From: Podarcis cretensis
Taxonomy: Eukaryota
NCBI GenBank assembly: GCA_951804945.1
Contig: OX638152.1
Coordinates: 71,610,001 to 71,674,000, forward strand
Direction: 5' to 3'
Length of the DNA: 64,000 nucleotides
Numbering within the stretch: the first letter of the stretch is position 1; each line of letters opens with the position of its first letter. The translations under genes and the position numbers were made by a program. Below are positions 4,843 to 50,465 of this stretch, piece after piece. The notes beneath the pieces are model-generated. The model was not told the DNA's origin. It ran no database searches and worked only from the letters and a program-made list of their open reading frames with translations.

Positions 4843-6354
4843 CTTTAAGTCGTATTATGAATCAGCAGCTTTTTGCTGGCTGAAAGAATGGCTGCTTCTT
4901 CAGAACACAGACATTTTGGACTTAGAAGGTTTCGACAATGCTTTTGGGTGGCATGCATATCTGTGGTATGACAAGGTTAAAGTGCATAAGGCTTTTAAAA
5001 ATCATATTGTCAGAAGAACATTGTTTAATGTCTGGACAAGATATAAAGACTTACTTGAAAATAAAACCCCAAGGTGGTTATCACCTATGGAAGCGAAGGC
5101 TCTGAAAAACTCAATATGGAGGTCAATTGGCCAAAATATTGGGAGATTTTGGAACAGGAAGGTGACAAATTGAAATTGCAGAGTTTCAAGAAATTAAAGG
5201 ATAAAGTGAGAGATTGGCTTCATTATTTTCAAATAAGGGAGGCTTATAATCTAGATAAAATAATTGGTTTCCAGGTGGAAAAATCAAAACTAGAAACAGA
5301 ATTGTTAGAATCCAAAGCTAAGACACTATCAAAAATGTATAATCTGCTGCTGAAATGGAACACTGAAGATGAAACGGTAAAATCTGCTATGATAAAATGG
5401 GCACAAGATATCGGCTATAATATTATGTTTGCTGACTGGGAACAGTTGTGGACCACAGGTATGAAATTCACGGTATGTAATGCCTTAAGAGAGAATATTA
5501 TGAAAATGATATACTGGTGGTACATGACCCCAGTCAAGCTTGCAAAAATCTATCATCTGCCCGATAATAAATGTTGGAAATGTAAAGAGACTGAAGGTAC
5601 ATTCTTTCACCTCTGGTGGACGTGCCCAAAGATTAAGGCTTTCTGGGAAATGATCTATAATGAATTGAAAAAGGTATTTAAATATACCTTCTTGAAGAAA
5701 CCAGAGGCCTTTCTCTTGGGTATGGTCGGCCAAGGGGTGTTAAAGAAGGACAGAACTTTTTTTATGTATGCTACAGCAGCAGCAAGAATACTCATCGCAA
5801 AGCATTGGAAGATACAAGACCTACCCACCTTGGAAGAATGGCAGATGCAAGTAATGGACTATATGGAATTGGCTGAAATGACTGGCAGAATCCGAGACCA
5901 GGGAGAAGAGTCGGTGGAAGAAGATTGGAAGAAATTCAAAATCTACCCACAGAAACACTGCAAAATTATTGAATGTTAATGACGTTGGAATGAAATGAAG
6001 TGGTTCTAGTAATAGGGTAAAATAAGAATAGGCAAGAAGGGATGGATTTTGGATGAAAATTTGAAGTTAAAATATGTGATGATAAATAATTAAGGGTACA
6101 ATATGAGGCTATGAATTTGCTGAATAAATCTTTAAATGGAATACAAAAAAAGGGAGGTGTGAGGAAGTCACGAAAATAAGTAAATGAATGTAAGATATTA
6201 TAAAAGAGGGATTTTTTAGATTTTATTTTTTCTTTTTATGTTGAATTTTGGTTTTTGTATTTTTGTATTTTTTGTGTTTTTTTTGTGTGTGTCATTATTT
6301 TGTAACTCTTTTTTGTTAAAAATTGAATAAATATTATTTAAAAAAAACCAACAC
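4843..6354 (+). mobile_element. 5'-truncated L1-clade LINE (ORF2 C-terminus, 3'UTR, poly-A)
   Basis: CWKC...GTFFHLWWTCPKI cysteine-rich domain; T-rich 3'UTR, AATAAA, A tail; 14-bp TSD AATTATTTGGAGGA (4829-4842, 6355-6368). Confidence 0.92.
4844..5979 (+). pseudogene. L1 ORF2 C-terminal fragment with one frameshift near 5105
   Basis: ORFs 4835-5173 and 5074-5979 join if one A is added to the A-run in CTGAAAAACTC. Confidence 0.85.
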
Positions 6355-19230: not shown

Positions 19231-21228
19231 GCACCCAATTAAGCACCCAATTTATAATATCTGCGAAAAGGCAAGCAGCTCTCAGTATATGCAAGAATAA
19301 TTCTGCAAGAGAAATTATATGGCATTTCCCTCATCTACCCAGGTGTCTTTTCTGCATAGGAAGCACAATGCCCCTAGCAGCTTCCTTCTGTCTTAGGTTT
19401 CTAATGTAGCAGAGAGACAGAATCGCAAGCTTAAAGTGCCAACAGCCAGCAGCTTTCTAGTGGCATCATTTTGTTTTCTGCTGTTGTTGTGTAAAAAAAA
19501 ACAGCAGCAAAAACCCAGCAAGGAAGATTCTCATGTCTCCCACCCCACCTGCAAATGGTTGTCTCATTTCTTATGGATTATCTAATTCTCACATCACCGC
19601 CTGCATTTTCCCCCCTTTTCACAGCTTTCTATCTTTGTGAAACATTAAGGCTGATATGCCATACATGTTCATTTTTATGCCTGTACTTGAACTACTCACT
19701 CTGTTCGGCTGCTTCGCTCTGATTTTTTTTCTTCTATACCAAGGCACCCGCTCTGCAATCCCCTGATACAGGAGGGCTGCCAAACTGCTGCAGGCTTTCT
19801 GAACATTACAGCCCTGCAAAATGTCAAATGATCTTCCAGTGAAGCTTGCTGGCTCAGTGGTATCTATTCATATGCTTGGAACATCTCCCTCTGGGCTTCC
19901 TCGAGCTTTCTCTTCTAATCCTTTCGTTCCCTCAAGAGCCCATCACTTGGCATATTGATTTCGCAACCCCCTATTAGCCAGACCAGGCATGGTATTCTCA
20001 GCTGAGCTGGTTCCACAAGCTCCTCAAGACTCCTGATGCAGCCTGTGATCCAGGAAGCAAAGCCATGCATTTGTCGCAAAAATCCTGCTTATTCTGTGTG
20101 GGGAATGGCAGGCATTTACTGCACTTTCAAAACATCTTATACAAGTTTGGATGGAACACTAATGCAAATTTGTTGATGCTACCTATAGAGATGGGGAGGG
20201 GTGGAACATAGAGACAGGGTCTTTGTTAAACATTAAGCAGAAGAAAACTAGAACAATCCACTTCAGTATTTAAATTAATTCAAATGATTAATTAATTAGT
20301 TCGACATTTACTTTGTTCTTTAATGAATAGTTTTTCACCACCTGTGTCTACGGTTTCTTGTCCCTTCTGGGCTTGATAGCTCCTCAACCCTCATGGGAAA
20401 CTTCCTGTATAATTGCACAATACAATGTAACCTTTATTTGAGGATCCAACTTGATGTGCCGATCTGCCTCATTTCCCCAAAGATTGCTGCTGTTCTTTTG
20501 CCATGTGAAGCCACTGCTTTTCAACTACGACTTTCACATTCTTCCTTCCCAACATTTCTTAGTCTTTTGTTGTCTTATATTCACATCTGTTTTTGCTTAG
20601 ACATTTCCTTCTGTGACCTCTTTCTCTTGTGATTTTGATCCTTACTCCTTTAATTGTTGTTGTTGTTACTATAGGTATTCTGGGTTCCTGTTCTATTTTA
20701 TTTGCAAGTATAATTATTCCTTCCCAAATAAGTCTGTAATAGTTATGTTCGAGCTAAGAACCAGAAACAGAGGCAGAATGACTATCAAAGGACTGGAGTG
20801 CAATTCCAGTGACAGCTGAGATTCCTTTAAGGCAGGGAGATAGGGAGCCTCAGGTTCCAAGGAACAAATGTGGCCCTTGGGACTCTCCTAGGCCATGACC
20901 TCTCTCCTCAAGCCACACCCTTCACTGGTCCTGCTCCATGTCCTCTTCAACTGATTGCCTAGAATTTGTCTGAATGGAGGTTGTGTGTTGCTTTGTGAAT
21001 GTCAAAACATTTGAGTTTTGTGTGGCCAGAATGTAACCTCCTGTAGAAAAGTGAGAGTCATATGTGTTTCTCAGCTCACTTTTCCCTCTTCCTGCCTACC
21101 CCTGGCATGTACACACACACACCAGGTTGGCTATCCTGAAGTGTGGGCTTCAGATTGAAAGAGGTTCTCCAACCCTGCCTAAAGAGACTGAGAAGCACAA
21201 GGCTTGCACCAATCAATCTAGGAGGAAC

Positions 21229-21721
21229 TGTCAGAATTCATGGTCGATCAGAGGTATGTGCCTATCTCTCCAGGCACCGGCTGAATTCTTTCGACCTCCC
21301 TCCGGCGACTCCCGGCAGGAAAAACACACGAGGTCCGTTCCGGCGATTTTCCTCAGGCTGTGAGAAAAACACACCAACTGCTTCTCCTCCTCCCTGCTCT
21401 CCAGCATATCCCAGGGAGGGGAATCAGACACAGACAGAAATGTATCTACATGTTTTTTATTCCTGTCTTCAGCAGTCAAACAGTGAAAGATGTCTGCTCT
21501 CTTCAACAAACAGAGAGAAACTCCAAACTCCACCCATGTACATCCTGTACAGGTCATATGACACACACACTGAGCTAACATCCGGTGCTCAGTACAGAAT
21601 GGACTGCCCCTTTGTTTCCATGGCAACAGTCACAAACATCCTGTCTGGCTTTGCAGCCACAAGCAGCTGACTGAGCTGCTGGAGCCTTTGCTTGCTGCAG
21701 CATTGCTGCTTTAGAATAACA
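21229..21721 (-). repeat. 3' LTR of Copia element (493 bp)
   Basis: Preceded on minus strand by PPT; AATAAA on minus strand at 21456-21461. Confidence 0.96.
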
Positions 21722-23824
21722 TACTCCCCCTAAAGTATCAATGCGTGCTGCGAGCAAAGCGTCATCCAGAGAAGAAAACAAACAGTTGTTATACTTATAA
21801 CACTCCCCTGTTGTTTCAGTTCCACCCTTGGAACTACCCGCCACTGGTTTTACCAATGTACCTCTCTGGTTGTGTGACTTCAAAGGAATGAGTGCATCTG
21901 CATTACCTTGGTTAGCAACTCTCTGTTGTGCCTTTGTCTCTGACTCAGACACAGCTTCAATTTGACCTTGGTCGTTTACAACAGCAACACATGCAATAGC
22001 TTGGTTGGCAAACTTATTTGAATACCTCTTGGGTGGTACACCCTTCGTTGCTCTCTCAGACCTACGTAAGAGGTGCTGCTCTCCCTTGCTTTCTGGTTCA
22101 GCCTCTGAACTCTCTGAAGAACCAGTACTAAGCTTAATCAGTGGGTCATCCTCCTCTTCTGAGGGTCTAGTCATTACGTGAGATTTCCTCTCAATGACTG
22201 TGACAACTGAGCTGTCTGAGCTATCGCTGTCATCATCAGTACTACTGAACTCAATAAGATCAAACTCATCATCATCATCATCAGAATCATCATCATCACC
22301 TGTGGGAAATATGTGAACAATCACTCTCTCCTGTTCAGGAGCACTCTCTAGGAATTTTGTGAGAATCACCTGTCCAGATTCAGACAAAATTACTCTGTAG
22401 AGACCCTTTTCATAACCCACAAAAATGCCTCTGGCATTCTTTACTCCACCTGGAGCTTCTGTCCTCACATGAGACCCAAAAACCTTGAAATGGGCAACAG
22501 AAGGTTTTCTGTGGAACAGTTTCTCAAAAGGAGAACATCCCAAGTCTTTTGAAACCTTTCTCAACCACGTGTAACAAAATGACATTAGTGACTCAGCCCA
22601 GTACTCATGTGGCAGATGTGAACTAAGCAATTGCGCATGCATTCCCTTTTGCAATTCTTTGTTCACCCTAACACAAACACATCTGTTCCAAGCTTCTTCG
22701 GAAGCTGCAATTTTGTGTCTTATCCCTTTCTTCTTCAGGAACCTCTGGAAATCCTGTAAGAGAAAAATTGGCTTCTCATCTGTGCAAAGACAATCTATGT
22801 CAGCATCATGCATATTTTTAACCTTATCACAAAACTCTTTAAACCTTTCTAAGGCTTCTTTCGGTCTCTCCAAAAGATAAATCCAGACAAAACCTGTAAA
22901 AGAATCAACACATATTAGGTAATACTTTGCATTGCCTCTAGATGGTGCTAAAGGACCAATCACATCAGCATACACCCGCTGAAATGCCCTGTCGACCCTT
23001 GAGGTGACCTGCTTGGCGTTCTTCTTGGCTACACCTGCAAAAGAAATCATGTTAGAATCACAAGAATTACATTCCATGTAATCACTTTGATTAAAAGTCA
23101 ACAAATACAGTCCATCTTTCTCTTTGGCAGAAAGATACAACTCTCCATCTTTGTAGATCTCGCAGTTCTCATCATCATAGGACAGTTTTAGTCCCTTCTT
23201 GGCGATCTGCGAAACGCTGAGCAGATTGTACTTCAACTCTGGAACCAAATAAACATTGTTTATAGTCAAGTTCAGACTTTTAAGATACACAGTCCCAATT
23301 CCGGTCGCTTCTAGCTCTTGACCGTTGGCTTGTTGTACAACGAAGCTTTGCTTCTTAAACGACAAAAACAAATCCCTGCGATGGGTCATGTGAACCGTCG
23401 CTCCCGTGTCTAAAACGAAGGAATTCCCCACTTGTGGTGTGGCTTTTAGGGACATCAAAGCCTTTGCAGGCTTCGCCTGTGACTTGGCATGACTTCTGCC
23501 TGACGCCTCAGACTTCGTGGAGCTTCCCTTGGCTCCTTTGTTCTGACGTGGCTTCTTGCAGTACCGCTGAAGATGCCCAGTCTGTCCACAATTGTGGCAT
23601 CGGACAACGTTCAAAGCTACAGCGTCTCCTCCAGTAGCTACAGCAGTGGGGGTGTCTGAACTCCGTTCTTCCCTCCCCCTGTCCTTGACTTCCAGGGCGG
23701 CAAGTCTGTCATGTTCACAAAGAACCACGGCAAAGACCCTGTCCGCCGTTAGATCAGCTGCTGGGAGAGACCCCAGCTGACTGGCAACCGTTTTGTAAGT
23801 CCGATTCAGGCTGTTGATCACCAT
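21575..23824 (-). CDS. Copia Gag C-terminus, CCHC zinc knuckle, aspartic protease, catalytically altered integrase, acidic tail; no RT/RNase H; runs into 3' LTR
   Basis: CHNCGQTGHLQRYC (23558-23599); FVLDTGATVHM (DTG at 23402-23410); NVYLVPELKYNLLSVSQI; YADVIGP...CTD...GIRH...LPHEYWAE...SPFEKLFHRKPSVAHFKVFG; GIFVGY; LRRSERATKGVPPKRY followed by no RT motifs. Confidence 0.9.
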   Translation of the reverse strand: MVINSLNRTYKTVASQLGSLPAADLTADRVFAVVLCEHDRLAALEVKDRGREERSSDTPTAVATGGDAVALNVVRCHNCGQTGHLQRYCKKPRQNKGAKGSSTKSEASGRSHAKSQAKPAKALMSLKATPQVGNSFVLDTGATVHMTHRRDLFLSFKKQSFVVQQANGQELEATGIGTVYLKSLNLTINNVYLVPELKYNLLSVSQIAKKGLKLSYDDENCEIYKDGELYLSAKEKDGLYLLTFNQSDYMECNSCDSNMISFAGVAKKNAKQVTSRVDRAFQRVYADVIGPLAPSRGNAKYYLICVDSFTGFVWIYLLERPKEALERFKEFCDKVKNMHDADIDCLCTDEKPIFLLQDFQRFLKKKGIRHKIAASEEAWNRCVCVRVNKELQKGMHAQLLSSHLPHEYWAESLMSFCYTWLRKVSKDLGCSPFEKLFHRKPSVAHFKVFGSHVRTEAPGGVKNARGIFVGYEKGLYRVILSESGQVILTKFLESAPEQERVIVHIFPTGDDDDSDDDDDEFDLIEFSSTDDDSDSSDSSVVTVIERKSHVMTRPSEEEDDPLIKLSTGSSESSEAEPESKGEQHLLRRSERATKGVPPKRYSNKFANQAIACVAVVNDQGQIEAVSESETKAQQRVANQGNADALIPLKSHNQRGTLVKPVAGSSKGGTETTGECYKYNNCLFSSLDDALLAARIDTLGGVCYSKAAMLQQAKAPAAQSAACGCKARQDVCDCCHGNKGAVHSVLSTGC
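21722..21735 (-). promoter_or_regulatory. Polypurine tract
   Basis: Minus strand TTTAGGGGGAGTA immediately before TG of the 3' LTR. Confidence 0.85.
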
Positions 23825-24273
23825 GAAGCAAAACCCTCCTGCAGACGGAAATTGCGTTCCACCATCTGCTGACGCAGAAATTTCATTTCCGTCAGGTGCG
23901 CTTGAACATCTCCATCAGGCGCAAGCCTCAGGTTAGTCAGCTTTTCAAAATACAGCAACGCTGAAGAACCTGCATCTCTCTGATGTGTCCTTCTCAGCGT
24001 GTCCCAAACATCTTTCGCGTGCTGTAAATCTTGTATATGAATAAGCTGAGAGTCTGACATGCACAGAATTATAGCGGTTCTGGCCTTCACATCCTGTGAC
24101 TCCCAAACAGGCGTTGGTGCTGCAGGGATGGGGTTCTCAATCACCCCAAACAGTCTCTGATTCTGCAGCAAGGCCTTCATCTTAATAGACCAAGATGCAT
24201 AATTCTCATTGGTCAGAAGGGGCGGAGAAGGCAGACCCCCCCCCTTCTTGGCATCCATTTTGAGTCCTTGCAT
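23818..24273 (-). CDS. gag: Copia Gag N-terminal/capsid part (continues into 21575-23824 after a -1 frame change)
   Basis: LTNENYASWSIKMKALL, WESQDVKARTAIILCMSDSQLIHI, AKDVWDTL are typical Copia Gag motifs. Confidence 0.88.
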   Translation of the reverse strand: MQGLKMDAKKGGGLPSPPLLTNENYASWSIKMKALLQNQRLFGVIENPIPAAPTPVWESQDVKARTAIILCMSDSQLIHIQDLQHAKDVWDTLRRTHQRDAGSSALLYFEKLTNLRLAPDGDVQAHLTEMKFLRQQMVERNFRLQEGFASW

Positions 24274-24763
24274 TGACTCTCAAACACAAGCCTCTAAAAT
24301 CCAATAGCTGGCTTGTTTACACTCTGTGCACCTGGCAGCTCTAACACTGGCTGCTTGGAAAGTCCCTTCCAACAGTTCCTTTGTAAGGGCCTAGTCTAAA
24401 CACGAGCTGTTTTAGCCTCTCTGGGCACAGCCTGACTTCCAGCCCTTATCTTGAAACTGGCCTGCGTTGCTAAGCAACCACATTCCTTTCCTTGGACAGG
24501 AAAAACCACAGGAATGTGTGGAATGCAGACTCTTCTCTCTCGGAGCTGTTTTTCCCAAACGTTGCTCCCGTGAAGCAGAGAATTAAGCCATCTGCATACA
24601 CACTCTTAAGCCCGAAAATCTCATACCTGGGCTCCGTAGCTTGGCTTTCAGCTTCTTCTGGTCAGCTTCTAGCTGCAGAGAATCAGCCTCCATCTCAGGC
24701 TTCCATGGAGAGGGATGAAAATAGCAGCTCTGCTCCTATTTCTGCAGACTTCCATGGATCGTA

Positions 24764-24783
24764 GAAACCATCCTCTGCTACCA
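24764..24783 (-). promoter_or_regulatory. Primer-binding site for initiator tRNA-Met
   Basis: + strand GAAACCATCCTCTGCTACCA equals the 3' 20 nt of vertebrate tRNA-iMet including CCA; 1 nt from the LTR. Confidence 0.93.
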
Positions 24784-24784
24784 A

Positions 24785-25277
24785 TGTCAGAATTCATGGT
24801 CGATCAGAGGTATGTGCCTATCTCTCCAGGCACCGGCTGAATTCTTTCGACCTCCCTCCGGCGACTCCCGGCAGGAAAAACACACGAGGTCCGTTCCGGC
24901 GATTTTCCTCAGGCTGTGAGAAAAACACACCAACTGCTTCTCCTCCTCCCTGCTCTCCAGCATATCCCAGGGAGGGGAATCAGACACAGACAGAAATGTA
25001 TCTACATGTTTTTTATTCCTGTCTTCAGCAGTCAAACAGTGAAAGATGTCTGCTCTCTTCAACAAACAGAGAGAAACTCCAAACTCCACCCATGTACATC
25101 CTGTACAGGTCATATGACACACACACTGAGCTAACATCCGGTGCTCAGTACAGAATGGACTGCCCCTTTGTTTCCATGGCAACAGTCACAAACATCCTGT
25201 CTGGCTTTGCAGCCACAAGCAGCTGACTGAGCTGCTGGAGCCTTTGCTTGCTGCAGCATTGCTGCTTTAGAATAACA
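24785..25277 (-). repeat. 5' LTR of Copia element (493 bp)
   Basis: Minus strand TGTTATTC...AATTCTGACA, followed by PBS; no difference from 21229-21721 seen by eye. Confidence 0.96.
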
Positions 25278-25377
25278 GGAACTAGGGTTCTACACCCGAA
25301 GCCTGGGTGTTCAGGTCATGCAGACAGGTGAAGCTGCCAGTGTCCCATTGCGCCCTTCTTCCCAATATTCTCCTAGC

Positions 25378-32363: not shown

Positions 32364-33386
32364 TATCTTACAGAAAAACCTATACACGTCTACTTCAGAA
32401 GACAGCTCAGTTGACTTCAATGGCATTTACTTCCAAATAAGTGGGCACAGGATTGTAGATTTTAGGTATTCTATGGAACTTCTTTACATTGTCAAATGGT
32501 TAGGCAACATTTCACACCAGAGGCTCACCAAGAAATTAGTGCGGACCCTTTAAGTAAGTATTTCATTTCTATTTCATCTTTTTGACAAGGAACTCAAGGT
32601 GGCATAGGTGGCATGGTTAATGGCCGAAGGTCACTAAGTGAGCTTCATGACTGAGCAGGGATTTGAACTCTGGTCTGCAAGGTTCTAGCCCAACACTCTA
32701 ACCTGGAGCCAGCCCAGCCATTAGGCAGGATGAGGCCACTGCCTCAAGTGGCAGCATGCTCATGAGATCTCACCTCAAATCACTCAAGATCTTGAGGAGT
32801 ATGGGAGATCTCATTCAATTTTGGGTGAGATCTCACCTCAAACTGGCACGATATTGCCTGAAATCAGTGCCAATGGTGGCAGCGCTTCTCCACCAGTGGT
32901 GGATGTAGCAAGGCGTGTGTTTACTTCAGGCCAGGAGGTAGTGGCAGAAGCAAGGTAGGTGGTGGTGGCAGTGGTGGAGCAAAGCAGCAGTCTCCCCTGC
33001 ACTGATCACTATGCCAGACTGGCTCTTAATGATACCATAGAGAAGAGGCAGAATGTTCTAGCTTACAAATGGATGGACACATGAAACTTACACAGACTGG
33101 AAATAAGCTGGTATGTCTCTCCCTTGCCACAGTGGTCGAGCTCACACATTGCATGTGGAAGGTCCCACAGCCAGTTATAGGCATCTTTTTGGCAAGGCTA
33201 AAACCCTGGAAAGTCACTGCCAGTCAGTGCAGACAATGGTGAGCTAGATGAAATAAAAGTCTGGCTTTGTTAAAGACAGTGCAGGCAATATTCAGAACAA
33301 AAGCAAAACTCAGAACAGAAGGCAGCTTTCTATCTTTCATTTCCCATGCATTGTGACTGTGGCAATATTTGGAACTGCCCACTTGA

Positions 33387-34335: not shown

Positions 34336-34466
34336 TCATAGTATTGGAAGGGACCATGAAGGATCATTTAGTCCAAACCCCCTGCGATGCAGGAACATTT
34401 TGCCCAATGTGGAACTCGAACCCACAGCCCTAAGGTGAAGAATCTCATGCTCTACCAACTGAGCTA
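34336..34466 (-). mobile_element. tRNA-Lys-derived SINE with CR1 3' tail
   Basis: Minus strand TAGCTCAGTTGGTAGAGCATGAGATTCTT...GTGGGTTCGAGTTCCACATTGGGC followed by CR1-like tail. Confidence 0.75.
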
Positions 34467-49949: not shown

Positions 49950-50465
49950 NNNNNNNNNNNNNNNNNNNNNNNNNNNNNNNNNNNNNNNNNNNNNNNNNNN
50001 NNNNNNNNNNNNNNNNNNNNNNNNNNNNNNNNNNNNNNNNNNNNNNNNNNNNNNNNNNNNNNNNNNNNNNNNNNNNNNNNNNNNNNNNNNNNNNNNNNNN
50101 NNNNNNNNNNNNNNNNNNNNNNNNNNNNNNNNNNNNNNNNNNNNNNNNNNNNNNNNNNNNNNNNNNNNNNNNNNNNNNNNNNNNNNNNNNNNNNNNNNNN
50201 NNNNNNNNNNNNNNNNNNNNNNNNNNNNNNNNNNNNNNNNNNNNNNNNNNNNNNNNNNNNNNNNNNNNNNNNNNNNNNNNNNNNNNNNNNNNNNNNNNNN
50301 NNNNNNNNNNNNNNNNNNNNNNNNNNNNNNNNNNNNNNNNNNNNNNNNNNNNNNNNNNNNNNNNNNNNNNNNNNNNNNNNNNNNNNNNNNNNNNNNNNNN
50401 NNNNNNNNNNNNNNNNNNNNNNNNNNNNNNNNNNNNNNNNNNNNNNNNNNNNNNNNNNNNNNNNN
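49950..50465. other. Assembly gap (516 N)
   Basis: N run. Confidence 1.

Follow-up and report, generated by a model that had tools for sequence, protein, structure and literature searches.

Non-autonomous long terminal repeat (LTR) elements are usually seen as decaying debris or as non-coding hitch-hikers. In the mouse, the IAP I-delta-1 and ETn/MusD elements carry internal deletions, depend on full-length relatives for mobilisation in trans and can reach high activity; they are class II endogenous retroviruses, not Copia elements, ETn being non-coding and I-delta-1 a recent deletion derivative. We know of no long-term conservation of a dead integrase in either ETn or I-delta-1. The subject of this report is a Ty1/Copia element of 4,049 bp on the minus strand, at positions 21229-25277 of a 64,000-nucleotide stretch of the genome of Podarcis cretensis (contig OX638152.1 of GenBank assembly GCA_951804945.1, positions 71,610,001 to 71,674,000 of the forward strand; "the window" denotes this whole stretch). 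With a probability of roughly 0.7, it represents a recent insertion of a non-autonomous Ty1/Copia family of lacertid lizards that has retained the capsid, the protease and a dead integrase, and that moves with enzymes supplied by a helper. The lineage has dropped its polymerase while keeping capsid, protease and an inactivated integrase.

The elements nearest in type have been described from plants. The TR-GAG elements (PMC4350172) and the GAG/PROT families of sugar beet (PMC13570524) likewise possess intact LTRs, primer binding site (PBS) as well as polypurine tract (PPT), lack the enzymes and keep a capsid open reading frame (ORF), and have been termed "semi-autonomous". The plant elements encode Gag alone or Gag and protease, and additional POL pieces, such as the partly decayed POL fragments kept by some sugar beet families, are described as decayed (PMC13570524). 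In the lizard family, by contrast, a single frame comprises Gag, protease and a full-length dead integrase fold conserved to 43% identity, and the host is a vertebrate. The element from P. cretensis also falls outside the definition of TR-GAG (a Gag-only ORF without protease, integrase or reverse transcriptase (RT), <4 kb), as it contains a protease and an integrase-like domain and measures 4,049 bp; nor is it a LARD or TRIM element with a non-coding internal region, in view of its 779-codon frame with recognisable domains. BARE-2 of barley, "a parasite's parasite" of BARE-1 (Tanskanen et al. 2007, cited in PMC13570524), is another Copia-superfamily element which requires the protein of a related autonomous partner. 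As summarised in the citing paper, BARE-2 is devoid of functional Gag but keeps pol; the lizard family, with Gag and protease kept and RT absent, is its mirror image. Autonomous squamate Copia elements, namely the Copia-6_ACar-like elements and the polyprotein P0179, belong to the same superfamily and squamate clade as the lizard family and share its Gag-protease-integrase order and its linker, but they carry the HHCC motif, the DDE triad, RVT_2 and RNase H, all four of which are absent from, or inactivated in, the family described here. A Copia-6_ACar-like insertion in the OCA2 gene of the corn snake indicates that autonomous Copia elements were recently active in squamates (PMC4657000). In the full-text literature searched, which does not include Repbase, no vertebrate Copia family was found described as devoid of RT yet conserving protease and dead integrase; this is not proof of novelty.

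The two LTRs of the element are identical over 493 of 493 bp, begin and end with TG...CA, carry an AATAAA motif at LTR position 261, and are flanked by a perfect 5-bp target site duplication (TSD), GGAAC. The PBS starts one base past the 5' LTR; its 20 nucleotides pair without mismatch to the 3' end of initiator tRNA-Met, and the identical 20-mer serves as reverse primer for this tRNA (PMC7744096). The PPT (AGGGGGAGTA, 21722-21731) adjoins the 3' LTR. The long open frame crosses the PPT and reads 144 nt of the 3' LTR before it stops at 21575-21577. A first, sequence-only reading of the locus had already noted the identical LTRs, the perfect TSD, the intact PBS and PPT and the frame that continues into the LTR, and each of these observations holds. 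As no difference was found over 2 x 493 bp of LTR, the insertion must be very young. If neutral substitution is put at about 1e-9 per site per year, which is an assumption of the analysis and not a measured value, the 95% upper bound of its age is roughly 3 million years. Paired LTRs, TSD, initiator tRNA-Met PBS, PPT, Copia-type Gag and an integrase located upstream of the RT position identify the element as Ty1/Copia; RVT_2 is missing, so that it is a Copia by descent, and non-autonomous. The domains occur in the order Retrotran_gag_2, DUF4219, Pol_BBD, rve and SH3_retrovirus, followed by an RT stub and an RNase H remnant. No further copies or fragments of the element were found within the window. 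The features are as follows:

21224-21228, no strand: TSD, left copy (GGAAC)
21229-21721, minus: 3' LTR in element sense, 493 bp, the first 144 nt being read by the long ORF
21575-23914, minus: long open frame, 779 codons and stop, first ATG at 23824
21722-21775, minus: pre-PPT stretch, 18 codons, with a motif conserved in the family, ending in the PPT AGGGGGAGTA
21776-21931, minus: decayed remnant of RNase H (its N-terminal part), catalytic Asp lost (Smith-Waterman alignment to P0179)
21932-22072, minus: RRSER..PPKRY linker and N-terminal RT stub of about 30 residues; junction of the RT deletion at 21932/21931
22073-22345, minus: acidic low-complexity linker (Asp/Ser runs), predicted to be disordered
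22346-22540, minus: C-terminal SH3-like domain of integrase (Pfam SH3_retrovirus)
22541-22993, minus: catalytic-core fold of integrase, triad D, D, V (weak Pfam rve match; structure 7z0h; structural model)
22994-23092, minus: remnant of the N-terminal zinc domain of integrase, HH half deleted, CC pair present
23093-23428, minus: aspartic protease, D-T-G intact within 23396-23413 (Pfam Pol_BBD, 72 bits)
23558-23599, minus: CCHC zinc knuckle (nucleocapsid part of Gag)
23830-23836, minus: site where the two gag frames meet, G3T4 run
23818-24273, minus: N-terminal Gag ORF, 151 codons, the last 4 residues out of frame before the stop (Pfam Retrotran_gag_2, DUF4219)
24274-24763, minus: 5' leader, from PBS to gag start
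24764-24783, minus: PBS, 20 nt, initiator tRNA-Met
24785-25277, minus: 5' LTR in element sense, 493 bp
25278-25282, no strand: TSD, right copy (GGAAC)

Each LTR additionally contains a 131-codon sense ORF (21231-21626 and 24787-25182, minus strand), which lies in a frame different from that of the read-through of the long ORF and may be due to chance.

Neither RVT_2 nor RNase H gave a Pfam match in the ORFs of the element, and the tail beyond the RRSER..PPKRY linker scored below zero with a local hidden Markov model (HMM) built from 61 full-length Copia polyproteins. The sequence-only reading was thus right in declaring RT absent. Its statement that RNase H is lacking as well was wrong in detail: a degenerate remnant of about 55 residues persists behind the RT deletion, although it does not match the profile. 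The residues encoded by 21931-21776 align to positions 348-406 after the linker of P0179, which correspond to the N-terminal part of the RNase H domain. The Smith-Waterman score of 63 compares with 30 ± 4.6 for shuffled sequences (0/500), and the 13-residue core scored 53 against 14 ± 4 (0/3000 shuffles); the catalytic Asp column and the catalytic residues are lost. According to the alignment to P0179, the deletion took about 317 RT residues, extending from about 30 residues into RT to the start of RNase H, and the rest of RNase H appears to have been removed by a second loss. Two other assignments for the tail were rejected. A MAFFT alignment placed an N-terminal RT remnant of about 80 residues there, but the Copia HMM gave no score past the linker and the significant match is that to RNase H. 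The pre-PPT motif (AD.LTK region), considered as a possible C-terminus of pol, gave a 17-mer match in P0179 no better than chance.

The integrase-like domain matches Pfam rve only weakly, at 22 bits, below the curated threshold of 32.6. When it was compared with the 61 full Copia sequences at columns that are at least 85% conserved, both Asp residues proved to be kept while the catalytic Glu is replaced by Val. The Trp-His...His half of the zinc domain is missing, the region being about 55 residues shorter than in P0179 and in P0030, a relative described below; the CC pair is present in the window copy. The window copy has also lost several further residues that do not vary among active integrases (Lys, Gly, Glu and Asn columns), and structural residues (Trp, Gly, Tyr and Pro columns) are retained. 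By sequence, the closest solved structure is Ty1 integrase (7z0h, E = 1.5e-7). An AlphaFold model based on a 50-row alignment showed predicted local distance difference test (pLDDT) values above 90 for the Gag helices, the protease, the integrase core and the SH3 domain, and below 50 after residue 527, the tail being without predicted fold. The modelled core resembles the integrase cores of foamy virus (PFV), with template modelling (TM) scores of up to 0.81; the confidence assigned to this core leans on the true integrases in the alignment. Judging by its residues, the D-D-V integrase without HH would very probably be unable to perform an insertion. RT absent, RNase H truncated, integrase without HH and with Glu replaced by Val, together with intact LTRs, PBS and PPT, define a non-autonomous element.

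The Gag region is split between two frames. The 151-codon ORF at 24273-23818 matches the Copia-type Gag families Retrotran_gag_2 (positions 1-113 of 172) and DUF4219, and the second frame (23914-21578, open for 779 codons) encodes the C-terminal part of Gag, the CCHC knuckle, the protease, the integrase-like domain, the acidic linker, the RT stub, the RNase H remnant and the LTR read-through; Pfam matches in it are zf-CCHC, Pol_BBD in the protease region, rve and SH3_retrovirus. The CCHC knuckle and the protease DTG are intact, as had been noted from the sequence. Comparison with relatives indicated that the first frame is correct up to just before 23833 and the second from 23830 on, so that the first 147 Gag residues lie in a frame different from the remainder of the gene, and the frame junction is a one-base change inside the G3T4 run at 23830-23836. 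A programmed -1 frameshift was considered and rejected: a heptamer of the X_XXY_YYZ type fits 23830-23836, but the 90 nt downstream fold no better than shuffled sequences (z = -0.02), and the relatives P0029, P0030 and P0179 carry gag in one frame across the break site. The lack of a downstream structure and the single frame of the relatives point to an ordinary one-base frame change or to mis-assembly of a homopolymer. Either the change was gained during or after the last copying, or the copy was mobilised wholly in trans, or the run was mis-assembled. With its gag broken, the copy as assembled could not supply full-length Gag. The earlier statement that the element keeps Gag is therefore true of the family, in which gag is in frame, but not of the window copy as assembled. 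In all comparisons described here, gag was read through the break with an X at that position.

Close relatives, identified by homology and exhaustive searches, all derive from lacertid lizards. The comparison proteins are gene models, so that only open copies were ascertained. They comprise copies from Podarcis lilfordi (P0001 with 79% identity, P0002 with 77%, P0004 and P0008), a chimeric gene model from Podarcis muralis (P0003) and a protein from Zootoca vivipara (P0029, XP_060129920.1) with 43% identity and a single frame of 869 residues. Over long stretches of the tail, P0001 agrees with the window copy at every residue, and its end falls on the same residues encoded by the LTR. P0029 contains an unbroken Gag, CCHC, protease, integrase-like domain, tail and the conserved pre-PPT motif; it shows the same HH deletion and Glu-to-Val replacement, and has additionally lost both Asp residues. 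The derived changes Glu to Val, Lys to Pro and Asn to Leu and the HH deletion are common to the window copy, P0001, P0002, P0004, P0008 and P0029; these copies of the dead-integrase family have retained the CCHC, the D[ST]G and the structural residues of the integrase. Among the proteins compared, no RT-bearing one had these substitutions or the HH deletion. The RT deletion is thus not private to the window copy, whose relatives P0001 and P0029 are RT-less with dead integrase instead of having full pol and an intact DDE triad. As RT loss and integrase inactivation are common to the copies in the window, P. lilfordi and Zootoca, both must predate the split of these lineages. Searching with a profile of the family alignment brought up P0029 and two grass Copias only. 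Among the 1.84 billion representatives covered by an exhaustive search, no protein with RT exceeded 34% identity, and no DNA encoding relatives turned up in scans of viral and metagenome contigs.

The gene names given to some of these relatives are at odds with their content. XP_060129920.1 is annotated as "FAM168A isoform X1", yet it is Copia-like from end to end; element ORFs are also present in two proteins that carry the name "vomeronasal type-2 receptor 26-like", CAI5771638.1 of P. lilfordi and one from P. muralis, and P0003 joins an element ORF to receptor exons. For lizard gene sets, the finding thus flags mis-annotated "host" proteins.

These host names would fit a scenario in which the open frames are host genes domesticated from Copia, the window copy being a decayed relative. 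We consider this scarcely credible. A domesticated gene should be LTR-less, single-copy and syntenic, whereas the window copy, with its identical LTRs, TSD, PBS and PPT, has transposed recently; the P0001 frame ends in LTR-derived sequence just as the frame in the window does; P. lilfordi has several paralogous copies, located on separate sequences; and the names belong to chimeric or mis-assigned models, P0029 being Copia throughout. Identical LTRs and the TSD, together with copies having the same tail on at least three P. lilfordi sequences and in P. muralis and Zootoca, indicate instead a multi-copy family that has transposed in the RT-less state.

A second RT-less lineage was found nearby in the tree. 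P0030 (845 residues, Gag-protease-integrase, with HHCC and D,D,E intact) ends 45 residues past its PPKRF motif and hence lacks RT; together with P0176-P0178 it forms a set of four near-identical variants, differing by 2-5 residues, on Logan contigs of 3.1-3.8 kb. P0030 shares 67% identity with P0179, a polyprotein of 1,338 residues that contains RVT_2 and is encoded on an ENA contig of 4.9 kb; P0180 (XP_077779123.1 of P. muralis) is a partial relative whose integrase is intact. When the Gag-to-integrase region was placed in a quick LG+G4 tree with ten outgroup Copias (support by Shimodaira-Hasegawa-like approximate likelihood ratio test, SH-aLRT), the dead-integrase family, P0030, P0179 and P0180 formed a lizard Copia clade with a support of 100; the dead-integrase family was one subclade (support 99), and P0030 paired with the autonomous P0179 (support 99). 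Grouping every RT-less row into one clade was rejected by the approximately unbiased (AU) test (p = 0.0013), the group having been named after the tree was seen. The last residues of P0030 have their best ungapped match at positions 350-352 after the linker of P0179, and the window family resumes at 349. Taken by themselves, the match scores fall short of significance (P = 0.14-0.21); a shared site is favoured only by position, a coincidence with a chance of about 0.014. The pairing of P0030 with P0179 and the nearly shared junction imply two or more losses of RT at almost one and the same site, or an exchange of RT-less 3' ends by recombination, or a recurrent event from which both derive, for example reverse transcription of spliced RNA.

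Taken further, these observations could mean that no long-lived RT-less lineage exists, and that an unsampled autonomous master recurrently yields short-lived RT-less copies through a deletion hot spot or reverse transcription of spliced RNA. The sister position of RT-less P0030 to autonomous P0179, the outcome of the AU test and the resumption of P0030 within 3 residues of the point used by the window family are in line with this, and the window junction reads AAG/G, which is compatible with an exon junction. We nevertheless regard such an origin as very unlikely for the family in the window: the copies from the window, P. lilfordi and Zootoca have in common an HH deletion and substitutions of the dead integrase which occur in no RT-bearing protein compared, they form their own well-supported clade, and the exhaustive search brought no RT-bearing protein above 34% identity. 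Moreover, as aligned, the P0179 residues at the 5' boundary would encode no GT donor at the junction.

The state of the long frame argues for its maintenance. In a simulation in which the window codons were mutated neutrally (kappa 2) until protein identity fell to the observed value, indels being ignored, means of 5.3 and 5.4 stops were expected relative to P0001 and P0002, with probabilities of 0.0025 and 0.005, respectively, for no stop at all; relative to P0029, 20 stops were expected, and the probability of none was about 2e-9 (Poisson). All indels observed in comparison with relatives are in frame. Replacements relative to two P. lilfordi copies had mean BLOSUM62 scores of +0.31 and +0.43, and of +0.63 in the integrase-like part, whereas random single-base non-synonymous changes gave -0.42 ± 0.15 (0/2000 reached the observed value). 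Identity to Zootoca P0029 amounts to 48% in the integrase core, 47% in the protease, 40-43% in Gag and 22-33% in the basic and acidic linkers. Frame retention and conservative replacements, also in the integrase-like part, thus support the view, advanced from the sequence alone, that an RT-less lineage has long propagated with its protein under selection; the frame of the dead-integrase family appears to be under constraint across a deep divergence. Identity to P. lilfordi is a mosaic, with 74-77% in the integrase core (22541-22993), 97% in the SH3-like domain (22346-22540) and 90-96% near the PPT and LTR, which suggests recombination between subfamilies or, possibly, RNA-level constraint near the PPT.

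Several points weigh against the interpretation as a helper-dependent family with a selected protein. The window copy itself carries a broken gag frame. No helper with matching LTR ends and PBS was found, the candidate partners P0179 and P0180 being available as proteins only. Domain by domain, identity to the nearest autonomous protein does not exceed 37-43%, which is far for co-assembly of Gag. Sampling by gene models sees only open copies, and protein comparisons alone do not cleanly separate protein-level from RNA-level constraint. Finally, the RNase H remnant and the pre-PPT stretch, for which no fold is predicted, are 48% and 41% identical to Zootoca, and 96% and 94% to P. lilfordi, a conservation equal to or above that of the real domains; a tail of this kind conserved without a fold may point to RNA-level constraint or recombination. 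The frame could in fact be open for RNA-level reasons, such as avoidance of nonsense-mediated decay, a cis coupling of translation and packaging, or cis signals near the PPT, with only Gag and perhaps the protease mattering as proteins. This is consistent with a frame that, in P0001 as in the window copy, continues across non-domain sequence into the LTR, with a disordered stretch that exceeds the integrase core in identity to P. lilfordi and has no predicted fold, and with P0030, which stops 8 residues past the junction, the tail peptide thus being dispensable there. The integrase region itself speaks for a protein-level role: its replacements are markedly conservative, its structural residues (Trp, Gly and Tyr columns) are kept while the catalytic ones are lost, and at 43% overall identity its core is as conserved as protease and Gag. 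On balance, an explanation at the RNA level alone is considered unlikely.

If the element belongs to a helper-dependent family, its RNA would be transcribed from the LTR and translated into a Gag-protease-pseudo-integrase protein. The RNA would then be packaged, and an autonomous Copia from its own lizard clade would provide, in trans, the RT and RNase H that copy it. An insertion made by integrase is indicated by the TG..CA ends together with the clean 5-bp duplication; the active enzyme would likewise come from an autonomous Copia, of which P0179 and P0180 are the nearest known examples. The dead integrase would be kept for non-catalytic work, for example in the architecture of polyprotein or particle or in binding the integrase or RT of the helper. 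For Ty1, recombinant RT activity is stated to need C-terminal integrase residues (Wilhelm et al. 2000, as cited in PMC3103432). The lizard family retains the SH3-like domain and the acidic tract at the C-terminal end of its integrase.

As a tentative extension, which is possible though doubtful, the lizard Copia clade may repeatedly spawn RT-less Gag-protease-integrase satellites near one junction, by way of a hot spot, spliced RNA or recombination of co-packaged RNAs, and one of these may have persisted, its integrase becoming a conserved non-catalytic adaptor that recruits RT or integrase of the helper to the satellite's own particles. If so, the adaptor would be a pseudo-enzyme evolved by the parasite of a parasite. 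The family offers a natural system to ask which retroelement proteins must act in cis, which roles integrase has besides catalysis, and how helper and satellite co-evolve, and it shows continued mobility of Copia elements in lacertid genomes.

The surroundings of the insertion in the window contain no recognised host gene, the eight other long ORFs (5074-5979 on the plus strand, and seven of 121-162 codons) being without Pfam match. Two tRNA-like sequences on the minus strand, at 32647-32720 and 34409-34466, were called tRNA-Ser (aga) by ARAGORN and scored 31 bits with the Rfam tRNA model, just above threshold; they are probably derived from short interspersed nuclear elements, or pseudogenes. 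A run of 516 N occupies 49950-50465 and represents a gap or masked sequence.

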